From Paragordius varius (Eukaryota > Animalia > Nematomorpha): DNA of 64,000 nucleotides. Within the stretch, counting starts at the first letter, position 1. Each line of letters starts with the position of its first letter. Below, piece by piece: positions 9,374-22,513 of the stretch. The stretch lies in the NCBI GenBank assembly GCA_964247055.1, contig OZ176057.1:3534001-3598000 (forward strand). The letters are read 5' to 3'. A program made the position numbers and the translations under genes. The notes under the pieces are model-generated. The model was not told where the DNA came from and did not search any database. It saw nothing but the letters and a program-made list of their open reading frames with translations.

Positions 9374-9755
9374 ATGAGTACAAATAATTTGATATTCCTT
9401 ACAGTAGGTGTGGATTACGACGTTTTGGATGCCCCTTATGTTATTGAATAGATGCGTTTGATTTCAAATTTTTATCATGTAGGCAAAATTAGGGCCAATT
9501 TTAATTATTTATAAGGGCAAATAGGTTAATTATGAAAACATAGATCCAAAAAAACTGTGATTTATTGTAAAAGGGTGCGGTATATAAAGACGTTATACCT
9601 ATATACTTTTACAAAACTTTATTATATTTAAGTTTTTGTTTTATTGCGGCCTAATCAAAAAAATGATTGCGAATATCCGGAATTTTTCTTTGGTATATGC
9701 CGGCATTTGACTTATAAATTTTTAATTATTATATCACACAATTTACATTTTGGAG

Positions 9756-9790
<35 letters not shown>

Positions 9791-10550
9791 TTTTCAATAG
9801 ATATTCCTTTTACTAACCGGTTCCTTTATGGTTAAACGATTCAGATTTTTCACAAATGCTCAAGATAACTTTGATGATTCTTTAATCCATACCCTAGAGC
9901 AGGTAAGAAATATGTTAAAAAAATCGTATTTTATATGCAAACAATATGAGTAAAAAAATACGTTTTGCAAGCAGCATTTAATAAAACAAAAAAGTTTTGA
10001 TAAAAAAAAGCGTTTTAAATTCTACACAAACTTTGAACCAAATGCTATATATAGTGATAATTGATAGGGAAAAAATGTAAAACTTCAAAGAGATTATTAC
10101 TTTTTACAAAAAAATTTTACTTCTTTAAACTTGTTTTTTTAAATATAACTCATTGTAAAATAAGTATGCAATAGGTATGTAATTTGGTTTAAACTTTTAC
10201 ATTTAATAATAATTATAGGAAAAATTTTAGGTATTTTTAAAGATTTGTCTATATATATATATATATATATACTCCTCTTTGTAATATTGATTTAAACTTT
10301 TTTTATTATTTAGAGTTTGAGTGAAGGTGTTAGCGATGGTTCATCCGCTAACCCCCAAGCAACCCTACGGGCCTTGCGAAAACGCAGATCAGCTGTTTCT
10401 CTCGCCTCGTCCTCGTCGTCTTTGAGTGAAGCAAATGCTGACACGGATGAACTCCTTTCCCGCAAAAAACGAGAACGATCTTCATCCAGTAGCCATAGCA
10501 GACGTAGGAGAAGACGTCACCATAGACGCTACAGATATTATTATGGTTAA
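9374..10550 (+). CDS. Secreted precursor (~122 aa) with furin sites and an Arg/His/Tyr-rich C-terminal peptide; exons 9374-9403, 9801-9902, 10314-10550
   Basis: MSTNNLIFLT|IFLLLTGSFMVKRFRFFTNAQDNFDDSLIHTLEQ|SLSEGVSDG...LRKRRSAVSLASSSSSLSEANADTDELLSRKKRERSSSSSHSRRRRRRHHRRYRYYYG*. Both introns are phase 0 with gtaggt and gtaaga donors, the last exon is GC-rich, and AATAAA lies at ~10644. Exon 1 is the least certain. Confidence 0.7.
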
Positions 10551-10979
10551 ATTTGGGGAAATTTAAATCTGTTGTGTTTTAACTAACTATGGCATACACA
10601 TTAAATTGTATTCCCTATATATAAATATCCCACAGATAATATCAATAAATGACAAAAATTGTGTGCGTAATAGTGTTTGTGTTTATGCGTATGTTCACAT
10701 TAAGAGTGTAGTGATAGCAAATTGTTTTGCAAGTTTTTTGAGACATGTTCGGCTTAATTAACGTTAAGGAGTAGTAAAGTCGACGCCAAAACATAATTTA
10801 AACCAAGGCTATATATCTTCATTTATAAACTCAATTAATTTAAGGTATCTATCTATAGGTTACAATTTTTGGATAGTTTATTTTTAAGGATATTATTTGG
10901 TAGTTTGGTATTGAATCTACTATATAAAACGGTAACGTGAATTAATTTCCTAGTTGATCCATCAAGATAAATGACTCGG

Positions 10980-11255
10980 TGTCCAAGTTAAATTGAATTT
11001 ATACGGACAAAACTTATAAATATAAACACCAATTTTTATCTAAAAGACAACCTTACTTATTAAACCCTTAATTTTTCTGATTTAAACTAATTAGTTACAG
11101 TTTTAAAATATAAAATTGATTGTTAATAATATACTCTATTTCAGACTTATTTAAAATGTATTGAAATAATTTAAGATTTAATAATTATAGCTGTCTTACA
11201 GAAAAAATATTTCTCTTTATATTTTTATTTGCCCGTATAATTTTAGTTTCTACTG
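10980..11255. mobile_element. MITE family A (cagtaaaa..ttatacggacaaaa TIR), degraded copy
   Basis: aattgaatttatacggacaaaac ... ttgcccgtataattttagtttctactg-ta. Confidence 0.6.
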
Positions 11256-18765: not shown

Positions 18766-20989
18766 TATATATAAAATATCCTATTATATGGAAACCTGTT
18801 ACACTTTTGCATAGAAAAATTATATAGTTAAATTTAAAACTTAAATTAGAATTTACCCCCAATATTTAAGCTTTATAATTAATATTTTTAATTGAAATAA
18901 CCCCAAATTTTAGGCTATAGGTGTACCCCTTTAAAATATTTTTGCAGCCCGCAAGAAATTTTTAAATAAAAAATTCTATAGAAAAATTAATTTTGTTAAA
19001 TAAATTCTGACGTCTTTCCAAATGTCGGCAATGAATTAACAAAAATTGTTAAAATATACCATTTTTTAGTCAAAGACAACACTTATTCAACCAAACGCAA
19101 CATGTTTCTCAAGTATCGCAACATTTTCCAATCAAAGATAAATGAAAATTGCATTTGCATGAAAAAATGTTAAAGTTTGCTTGAAAAAAATGTTGTTTTT
19201 GACTGAAAAATGGTACAAATTGTAGTTTTTTACAATTTTCTTTTAAACTTAATAAAACTGTTAAATCCCATATTTTTTGCCAATGCGTCCCGTCGGATTT
19301 TTCAATCCCAAAAAGCGGCCCGCGAAGTTATTGGAAATTATTAAATATCAATCAAATCATATTGATCTATTATTAATACATAGATGTAAAATAATGATTC
19401 CACCTTATATAAAACTAAAAAATAATTTTTCATGGTATTTTAAGATAATGTTGACTATCTCAGATCACCGTTAAAAAACTTTGTCATTGAAAACATCACT
19501 TTTAATTATATAGAATATAAAATAAGCCGTTTCAAACGGATATTAAATATTTTATAATTAGTTTTTTACCAATATATTTGCAAAAATTTATTAAAATTAG
19601 CCATATTCCTGTTATTAGATTAAATAAATATTAAAATAGTCTTAACTTTCATCTATGATTAGATGGTATCTAAAAAAATTATTTTCATGCTGATATACAA
19701 TATTATTGTTGATCATAGGTTTGGTTTTGGATTTATAAATGTAATCGTACCTCTTTCAAAAATATTTGAATAGAAGCTTCTCACGTGACATAAAACAGTA
19801 TAATATTGTGAAAATTGTTAAATGTAAAAAAAAATTTTAATATTAAAAATTTGTTTTATTCCGTATTCCTCACCCAATATTGTCACAAGTGACGCAAATG
19901 TAGATATTTGTTAAAGTAGAATAGATGTTTAGGGCAAATTTGTTTTTTTGCATATCACATTAGTTTTTAACCCCTAAAATTTGGTTTTATATACTGGTGT
20001 CATCAACTTAATAATTTAATAAGTTTTCTTGCTAGTAGAGTTTTGTTACACCTTGACTATTTCGAAATATATTTATGTAATATCATAAAAATATTAAAGA
20101 CGAACACCTTAAACCACCGATAGGGTGTGGTTGTTTTTAACCATTTTTTTAACAATTAAAAGTGTAGAATTACCAACTTTTATGTCAATAGCTATTGCCC
20201 TTGAAATATATATATATCATAAATTTTTATTTTGCACAAAGTCTGAAAATAATTGATTTAATTGAAAATGTTATTACACGGATTCTTAATCATTGCAGTA
20301 AGTAGATAATATTTGTTATATAAAATATTTATTATATAATTTTTTATTGGATTCCAATAATTCTGATAAGATTTGTAAAAGAATATTTTAGTATAACAAA
20401 AAAATATTTAATTTTATTATAATTGTATTATTTTAAAGCGATTAAAATAAGACAAAAGAAATGTTTTGTTGAAATTTTGTAATTTAATCTTTATAATTAA
20501 TTATTAAATGATTTCAATTATTAAAGTGAGTTTCTTAACTTAATCAATTTTATAACTCTATTTAAATATAATGACATCGAAACTCTAAAAATTCTCTATA
20601 TAATTTGAGTAAATTCCATAATGTCAGCTAACACTGCAATTCAAATATTGTATTAATTTAGATTATTTGAATTCATTCAGGCAAGCTTCTTAAGTATATC
20701 TTCATCCAAAAAGTAAAAATTATTTCCTTTTTTATTATTAATTTTCCCTCTCTTTTCCTACAAAAAATCTAAAATATTTGGAGAATATTATAATTCTATA
20801 GTGAAAGCATCAAAAAAAATTAATTAATTAAATACATAATCTAACTTCGTTAACTACAATATTCTCAAATTTATAACTTTTTCACATTGAAGCGCCAAAC
20901 AAATAAAACATATTTACCAGTTATATCATTTATCGGGTTTTTTTAAAAATATGATTCCGTAAGAAATCAATTATTTATATCATTTAAAA

Positions 20990-22000
20990 TATCCATCGGC
21001 ATATTCATATTTTGCCTATCTCACCAAATTTGATTTTCTCGTTTGTGGCAACCATTTGTAAGCCATTTTCCAACGTCTTCGAAATTTTTGAAGTGCAACA
21101 ACTTGAGGATGTTCTCCATAAATGCGAAGATGTATTGGTCAGATGGCTCCTAGGCAAAAGAGTACATATGCGGGAGAGTTTCCCATCAAAGAGATTTTAA
21201 CGTGTTTTTCGCTGATTTTGACATGTTAAACGGAGAGCATCGCATTAAATAACTTTGTTATATCTTGTTGTCAATCCTTGTTATTTTTCGCTTTATTCAT
21301 GGTTTATATTAATCTTTTGTCGGCGATAATGTGTAATAACGTCACCGGGTTCTAAAAGTTTTTAATATATAATACCGCTCCCATGGTCCTCTTGTCGAAG
21401 CAATTCAAACTTCGTGTTGATGGACCGGTTTGGTAAAATAAAAGCACGATTTTTTCCCTTAAATTTATAAAATAAACCCAATTTAAAATCACCGGAAATT
21501 CATTTCGTAATGTTAAAAGAGGATTTCACACCTTTTGTCATACCGGAAATTTATTTCGTAAGGTTAAAACAGGATTTTTTTGCCATTTTCGATTCGACAT
21601 CCATAATTGTGAAGCACATTTACATATATCGGTCGTTCCCATTGCTAATGGCCGTTCTACTGATTTTTTTTCTTCTACCAACTGCCGTTAAGTTTAAGTT
21701 GAGCAAACATCCAATAACTCTTGCACTTTATCGTCTGCGCAATTTTGTGGTCTACTAAAGCGCCTTATCTTTTCACATCGAATTAGCAGGTTTATTAATT
21801 CAAAACCATGTTTCATCACATGTGTAAATCGAAGTATGTTTACCATAGCTAAAAACCGGTAAACTATGACTTTTCTTTTGATAAAATATCTTTTTCAGGT
21901 ACAAAATTTGACGTGACTACTAAATATAAAAAAAATAAGACGATACCTCAGAAGTCGTTTAATGAGCAAAACGAGGAAAATTTAATCATCTGCGTATTTT
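20990..22000 (-). mobile_element. Decayed mariner (Mos1-like) transposon
   Basis: Minus-strand remnants, in order: DDKVQELLDV...ISRTAISN; GIIY*KLLEPGDVITHYRRQ...YNKVI*CDA; WETLPHMYSFA*EPSDQYIFAFMENIL...HFKNFEDVGKWL. These are the mariner HTH, GVLYYELL.PGET and WEVLPHPPYSPDLAPSDY motifs, with many stops and frameshifts. Confidence 0.85.
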
Positions 22001-22264
22001 TCACTAATGTTTTACTCAATCAAACCGGTAATAACTTATAACTAAACCTGGTTAAAATCTAGTTGCGAAAAAAGGCAAAGCCAAACTTTTTAATGTTTAA
22101 ATGCAGTTAGTTACAGATTCTAGATCATGCTTTATAGATGTCGGAAAATAATGTAAATAAATGTCATATATGAAATCATACAAGAATATAACTTTAATAT
22201 CTCCTAAACATATATAATCAAATAATTAAGATACCACAACTTTTTTATTTTATATTGGAAATAG

Positions 22265-22513
22265 GTTCTACTATTGGTCGTAGACATAAATGGAAGAATA
22301 AACCATCAAAATTTTGTTGATGCCAGCATTCAAGCTAACTCAAGATATGGGAATGGTAGACGTCATAATAATAGGGGAGGATCACGGGGTCGTCGGGGTT
22401 CTTTTGGTAGATTTTTCGGAGGTCAGCGAGGTGGGAGATTTTTCAATCGGACACGCTTTTTTAATCAAACTAACAGAACTTTTTTTAACAATTTCTTTTG
22501 GCGACGTGGGTAA
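22265..22513 (+). CDS. Last exon of a secreted Arg/Gly/Phe-rich cationic peptide precursor; first exon uncertain (candidate 20508-20525)
   Basis: aatag|VLLLVVDINGRINHQNFVDASIQANSRYGNGRRHNNRGGSRGRRGSFGRFFGGQRGGRFFNRTRFFNQTNRTFFNNFFWRRG*. An in-frame TAG sits immediately upstream, so a phase-0 splice is required. AATAAA at ~22568. Confidence 0.72.
   Translation, partial: VLLLVVDINGRINHQNFVDASIQANSRYGNGRRHNNRGGSRGRRGSFGRFFGGQRGGRFFNRTRFFNQTNRTFFNNFFWRRG

Follow-up and report, generated by a model that had tools for sequence, protein, structure and literature searches.

The antimicrobial peptides (AMPs) of Hydra are made with a signal peptide as precursors that are cleaved, the peptide itself is bipartite and charge-biased, and their paralogues are clustered in the genome, many of them silent under standard conditions (PMC10945409). 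The armadillidins are glycine-rich amidated AMPs of terrestrial isopods (PMC7017220, PMC5031766). They are Gly/Arg/aromatic peptides with a GGGX tetrapeptide signature, present in 3-7 copies in the mature peptide, and their printed sequences end in YRG and are given without C-terminal amidation (PMC7017220). In Drosophila, AMP polypeptides such as Baramicin are cut by furin (PMC8423362). Here we compare with these systems three loci, called G1, G2, and G3, in a stretch of 64,000 nucleotides (nt) of Paragordius varius contig OZ176057.1 (the window, by whose positions all features are numbered; loci are on the plus strand unless marked). Read directly, the sequence between 9.3 and 22.6 kilobases (kb) allows a small spliced gene to be drawn at each of the three loci, all on the plus strand. 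They are probably three real, small, unannotated, lineage-restricted genes. As to what they encode, we favor secreted, disordered, lineage-restricted polycationic prepropeptides of the host-defense type, a tentative reading that we hold at somewhat under an even chance.

The architecture of the three loci is directly visible. All lie on the same strand and have a first exon of 10-13 codons, a hydrophobic core interrupted by a phase-0 intron, a polar spacer, and a tail with 18-24% Arg that runs into Gly-stop. An earlier sequence-only reading of this DNA had described three same-strand loci, phase-0 introns splitting the hydrophobic leaders of G1 and G2, a G3 exon in need of a phase-0 splice, and Arg-rich tails closing in Gly-stop; each of these points, coordinates included, is borne out when the sequence is read directly. 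The introns of the G1 and G2 models are in phase 0 and have canonical donors (GTAGGT and GTAAGA in G1, GTAAGT in G2). A T-rich tract precedes every acceptor in G1-G3, which counts in favor of the models; the acceptors themselves call for caution, as any exon whose bounding stop is TAG will have an AG in phase 0 at its 5' end. The putative leaders are hydrophobic and 17-20 residues long, with small residues close to plausible cleavage sites. The net charge of the whole protein is +11, +16, and +14 for G1, G2, and G3, respectively, and all three have a strongly cationic predicted mature part and a terminal Gly that could serve as an amide donor.

The same loci are statistically odd. Among all 62 open segments of at least 70 codons in six frames, Arg makes up 20-24% in the G1-G3 exons and 11% in the next best. 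The Gly-stop ending is found in three of three loci versus 31 of the 904 open segments of at least 30 codons (3.4%), a background from which the tails stand out. The base composition across the entire window is 25% GC, and the G1-G3 exons are among its most GC-rich islands, with peaks of 0.49-0.60. In the proposed frames the GC content at third codon positions (GC3) is 0.27-0.37, below that at first and second positions (GC1 and GC2). We count this for coding because such a pattern is what drift under AT-biased mutation should leave in a coding sequence. In their Arg codon mix the exons resemble the two long open reading frames (ORFs) of the window. No DNA tandem repeats were found within the G1-G3 exons, so the Arg runs are not products of slippage or microsatellites.

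The strongest independent support for G1-G3 as genes comes from the placement of mini-ORFs, defined as ATG-initiated frames of 7-25 codons followed by a phase-0 GTRAGT or GTAGGT donor. Such strong-donor mini-ORFs are rare, only four on the plus strand and two on the minus strand in 64 kb. Three of the four on the plus strand (9374, 15152, and 20268) sit 0.3-2 kb upstream of the G1-G3 exons, into which they join in phase 0 to form continuous hydrophobic leaders. The rough probability of this placement is p < 0.001, with criteria that were fixed partly after G1 and G2 had been seen. The exons of the G1/G2 region are also single-copy by depth in organism B, the one relative that the read archive contains, unlike the adjacent repeats, and this again counts in favor.

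The features of the three loci are collected in Table 1. The spliced G1 model is 122 amino acids (aa) long and both of its acceptors are TAG/ in phase 0. Its order is the predicted leader MSTNNLIFLT/IFLLLTGSF, the NFDDS spacer, a Ser-rich propiece interrupted by RKRR and RKKR (two sites of the R-X-K/R-R type), and the tail ERSSSSSHSRRRRRRHHRRYRYYYG followed by the stop. The spliced G2 model is 89 aa long, with a phase-0 acceptor TTTAG/, LFDDI in the spacer, and RRNRRRFG-stop as the C-terminus. The last exon of G3 opens directly behind TAG and ends in FFWRRG-stop; its composition is 20% Arg and 17% Phe/Tyr/Trp. This exon lacks a start codon of its own and therefore needs an upstream phase-0 exon.

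Table 1. Features of G1, G2, and G3 as read from the sequence (a slash marks an exon-intron boundary; leaders are predicted).
Feature	Position	Strand	Description
G1 exon 1	9374..9403	+	MSTNNLIFLT, first half of leader, donor ACA/GTAGGT
G1 exon 2	9801..9902	+	Rest of leader IFLLLTGSF and spacer with NFDDS; acceptor TAG/, donor CAG/GTAAGA
G1 exon 3	10314..10550	+	Ser-rich propiece with RKRR and RKKR, tail RRRRRRHHRRYRYYYG, stop; GC 0.49, GC3 0.37
AATAAA	10644..10649	+	3' of G1 stop (weak evidence, frequent in AT-rich DNA)
G2 exon 1	15152..15190	+	MNIKLLIPFLLIL, donor CTA/GTAAGT
G2 exon 2	15493..15723	+	Leader end FLAIIGG, acidic spacer LFDDIYNSALDG, 18-Arg tail ending RRFG, stop
AATAAA	15724-15729	+	Right after G2 stop
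G2 cassette copies	15790..16812	+	Four decayed tandem copies of 3' half of G2 exon 2, stop and 3' flank
G3 exon 1, candidate a	20268..20297	+	MLLHGFLIIA, strong donor GCA/GTAAGT, intron 1967 nt
G3 exon 1, candidate b	21648..21686	+	MAVLLIFFLLPTA, most hydrophobic, weak donor GCC/GTTAAG
G3 exon 1, candidate c	21866..21898	+	MTFLLIKYLFQ, donor CAG/GTACAA, intron 366 nt
G3 last exon	22265..22513	+	Leader end VLLLVV, spacer, Arg/Gly/Phe/Asn tail, three N-X-T sequons, WRRG end, stop
AATAAA	22568-22573	+	3' of G3 stop

The DNA downstream of G2 bears on whether its frame is maintained. The cassette copies lie at about 15790-15945, 16262-16400, 16462-16620, and 16672-16812, each with an acceptor-like T-rich tract. 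The frame has been lost in three of the four. The third copy is open (16409-16600) and ends in Gly-stop, and no AG acceptor there permits a phase-0 join to exon 1. Only the parental copy has kept the full frame, together with the highest GC. Retention of the parental frame while three of the four copies decayed may be taken as mild evidence of constraint.

Several observations weigh against the reading of G1-G3 as genes for secreted defense peptides. Three RNA runs of the species (19-30 megabases of contigs; 9750-15749 covered) yield no contig on G1 or G2, and the share of sampled sequence words is 0.00 in all three; the RNA support that the sequence-only reading had named as a check was thus not obtained, a weak negative because the runs are small and their tissue and condition unknown. 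The five spliced models are absent from a collection of 15 billion proteins by exact look-up, and homology searches of collections of clustered (5.8 billion) and representative (1.84 billion) proteins, word-indexed for all three loci, found no homologue of G1-G3. Conservation therefore cannot vouch for the three loci. The models leave choices at their 5' ends: an in-frame Met at 9828 in exon 2 offers an alternative start for G1, which would then have no leader, and the first exon of G3 is ambiguous among three candidates. Among these only the one at 20268-20297 has statistical weight, because the relaxed donor GTA gives about one chance candidate per 500 nt. AT-rich DNA readily encodes Phe, Ile, and Leu and hence hydrophobic peptides, which makes the leaders plausible rather than proven. 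Dinucleotide shuffles of each exon give a frame that is open throughout in 7-16% of cases.

These results have to be set against the possibility that the loci are no genes at all, being instead open frames that arose by chance or are decaying in DNA that is GC-rich and prone to duplication, or proto-genes that are not translated, with leader exons that are a coincidence of AT-rich sequence. We regard this as unlikely, though as the strongest of the rival readings. It would account for the absence of RNA contigs on G1 and G2 and of homologues for all three loci, for the ease with which shuffles yield comparable open frames, and for the four decaying copies that follow G2. The unrelated 134-codon open frame antisense to those copies points the same way, because it demonstrates that long open frames are possible there without a recognisable protein. 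What such an explanation does not readily accommodate is that the oddities coincide threefold on one strand: Arg of at least 20%, Gly-stop, GC3 below GC1 and GC2, rare strong-donor ATG mini-exons upstream, and phase-0 joins that give hydrophobic leaders. The three shuffle probabilities multiply to ~1e-3 with the leader exons not yet counted.

If the loci are genes for secreted host-defense peptides, the steps that we infer for them (transcription, splicing, secretion, cleavage, amidation, and activity) can be laid out from the precursor design. Each prepropeptide would enter the secretory pathway by a signal peptide that is split by a phase-0 intron in the gene, and signal peptidase would remove the leader. 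Furin-type convertases would cut G1 at RKRR and RKKR, where the sites are clear, and possibly G2 and G3 at RR. Peptidylglycine alpha-amidating monooxygenase would then use the exposed C-terminal Gly for amidation. As products we expect intrinsically disordered polycations that would bind polyanionic targets outside the cell, for example microbial envelopes or nucleic acids, and it is this predicted extracellular action on polyanions that leads to host-defense-type peptides.

Secretion could also serve other ends. Gland products such as saliva, venom, seminal, silk, or cement proteins, coacervating adhesives, or cell-penetrating effectors that act on another organism would share the very same sequence evidence for secretion, and the present data do not separate them from defense peptides. 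Their disordered tails, rich in Arg and aromatic residues as in the G3 composition given above, would suit cation-pi coacervation, and G3 has three N-X-T sequons. The nearest clusters of G3 in the protein atlas are secreted disordered proteins, though with scores below chance level. We consider a gland function fairly improbable.

Whether the three loci form one family is a separate matter. The sequence-only reading had proposed a single homologous family, a claim that found no support in shuffles keeping the regional composition: the similarity between G2 and G3 gives p=0.076, and G1 has no similarity to G2 or G3 (p of at least 0.5). The 70 nt 5' of the start codons are no more alike than sequences upstream of random ATGs. 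The FDD motif that had been seen in both G1 and G2 is indeed present (NFDDS and LFDDI), but a match of three residues has no weight. The common layout without demonstrable sequence kinship is compatible both with duplication followed by very rapid divergence and with separate origins. A bolder proposal, which we think improbable, is that G1-G3 are the part seen so far of a lineage-restricted and quickly evolving family of secreted polycations that are amidated, protamine-like, and dominated by Arg rather than by Gly as in the armadillidin type. Their tails would be renewed by tandem duplication of a 3' cassette as at G2, and their role would be in defense, cell penetration, or nucleic acid condensation.

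In searching for kinship between the loci, the 5' motifs common to G1 and G2 (TGTKTGCCWACGKT and CATAT..TTATTTTGG) were set aside, since they occur at background frequency and other matches to them have no exons behind. DNA similarity between the loci is drowned in AT-rich noise, the best match being a shared non-coding repeat.

The preferred reading of secreted defense peptides was also set against a non-secreted one, in which G1-G3 are RS/RG-rich or protamine-like nuclear proteins whose N-termini have been mis-modelled. G1, for instance, could start with MVKRFRFF in exon 2 at the in-frame Met already mentioned, and its Ser-run followed by an Arg-run recalls RS or protamine-like tails. The other two loci fit poorly, as a start codon that could serve before the tail is lacking from G2 exon 2 and from the G3 exon, both of which open with hydrophobic residues directly behind a TAG acceptor. 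No RRM, KH, or other domain was detected by Pfam; more generally, a known non-secreted family, which the sequence-only reading had taken as a match that would overturn it, was not found by Pfam or homology searches. We hold a nuclear role to be very doubtful. Least probable of all are neuropeptide or hormone precursors, for although dibasic sites and a terminal Gly are present in the sequence (with two perfect convertase sites in G1, an -RRF-amide end in G2, and an FxxxR-amide-like end in G3), bioactive neuropeptides are usually conserved across taxa, yet nothing matches G1-G3, and the tails are long, of low complexity, and without repeated peptide copies between dibasic sites.

The lack of a recognisable homologue, already noted in the sequence-only reading, was upheld in the protein collections, Pfam, and the atlas. 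Pfam detected no domain in the ORFs of G1-G3 (for the G3 ORF, no match at E up to 1) and none in the flanking ORFs between them, and the atlas scores of G1-G3 are not above chance level. The sole match of G2 in an exhaustive phmmer search (P0001) is an unrelated protein with eight tandem repeats, the score being summed over the repeats. The nearest named atlas cluster for G3, the schistosome immunogenic miracidial antigen 8I' (PF27835), was rejected, having no Pfam match and scores (0.53 and 0.71) below chance level.

The contigs of organism B are nearly identical over the G1 exons, with 0-1 differences, and in run X5 identical or nearly so over several pieces of 150-230 nt of 9750-15749. Either organism B is very closely related to the species studied here or one species goes by two labels; the low word share of organism B is due to low coverage. 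The ratio of nonsynonymous to synonymous substitution (dN/dS) has no power here because this only relative in the archive is nearly identical.

The surroundings of G1 and G2 are repetitive. Perfect (TA)n microsatellites lie in both G1 introns near the acceptors (9758-9789 and 10250-10271) and upstream of G2 (14266-14287). A dispersed repeat with 64% identity over ~300 nt is common to 10040-10318 in G1 intron 2 and 15937-16229 between the G2 cassette copies. The depth of organism B is elevated across 9950-10349, and a high-copy repeat occupies 10950-11800, where the contig depth of organism B reaches ~1900 versus 1-6 in neighboring single-copy DNA. The frame antisense to the G2 copies (16224-16625, minus strand) ranks third in length among the open segments of the window and has no Pfam match.

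Elsewhere in the window, a single ORF of 450 aa at 46482-47831 on the minus strand has a match to the DAN cystine-knot domain (Pfam E=2.4e-8) that is limited to residues 152-183 amid long unmatched stretches; an identical protein was not found in the public assemblies searched. An ORF of 224 aa at 49767-50438, also on the minus strand, is rich in Gln, Asn, and Asp and belongs to no Pfam family. On the plus strand, a GC-rich open frame of 80 codons runs to a stop at 3802-4041. Its nearest named atlas clusters are short-chain dehydrogenases, with weak scores and no Pfam match, and it resembles the terminal exon of a gene for a conserved enzyme. Several GC-richer open frames on the plus strand at 40573-43263 are dense in N-X-S/T sequons, and one of them ends at a strong donor, AAT/GTAAGT (43201). 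These frames are probably exons of a multi-exon glycoprotein gene.

If G1-G3 are transcribed and their products secreted, they would be three orphan polycationic peptides of a kind that annotation based on ORFs and homology misses. This would strengthen the case for small, taxon-restricted secreted peptides as a large hidden share of animal gene sets, and the three would supply new Arg-rich scaffolds for antimicrobial, cell-penetrating, or coacervation tests. As the general design is already well known, the gain would be a catalogue entry and test candidates rather than a new principle.

How, then, do the three loci compare with the described systems? Like the armadillidins, they would combine a signal peptide, putative here, with a linear, cationic, disordered peptide rich in Arg and aromatic residues, and they are lineage-restricted. 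The terminal Gly is common to G1-G3 and the printed sequences of armadillidins CE and PP, which have the YRG end. Kinship with the armadillidins is nevertheless not borne out. GGG is absent from G1, G2, and G3 versus 4-6 occurrences in armadillidins H, CE, and PP, and with it the GGGX signature. Gly makes up 3-18% of G1-G3, in which Arg dominates, versus 46-54% of the armadillidins. Shuffle tests found no similarity beyond composition (p 0.09 to 0.99). With the arminins and periculins of Hydra, the three loci share taxon restriction, a genomic cluster, and a bipartite, charge-biased precursor (PMC10945409). The Hydra paralogues can be recognised as homologues of one another, whereas G1-G3 cannot, and the acidic piece is short and weak compared with the Hydra design, with three Asp in G2 and a neutral spacer in G3. 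Homology to the arminins, which are confined to the genus Hydra, was not seen, as G1-G3 had no protein match of any kind. G1 has a Baramicin-like trait in its two R-X-K/R-R sites, which would free several peptides from one precursor; it has no sequence relation to Baramicin and no repeated peptide modules. The myticalins and similar peptides (PMC5577615) are multigenic and consist of a leader and a linear cationic peptide, a layout like that of G1-G3. In families of that type the leader is conserved and the cationic peptide hypervariable, whereas the leaders of G1-G3 are not conserved among themselves. Judged by their predicted precursors, G1-G3 would operate like a known kind of peptide without belonging to a known family.

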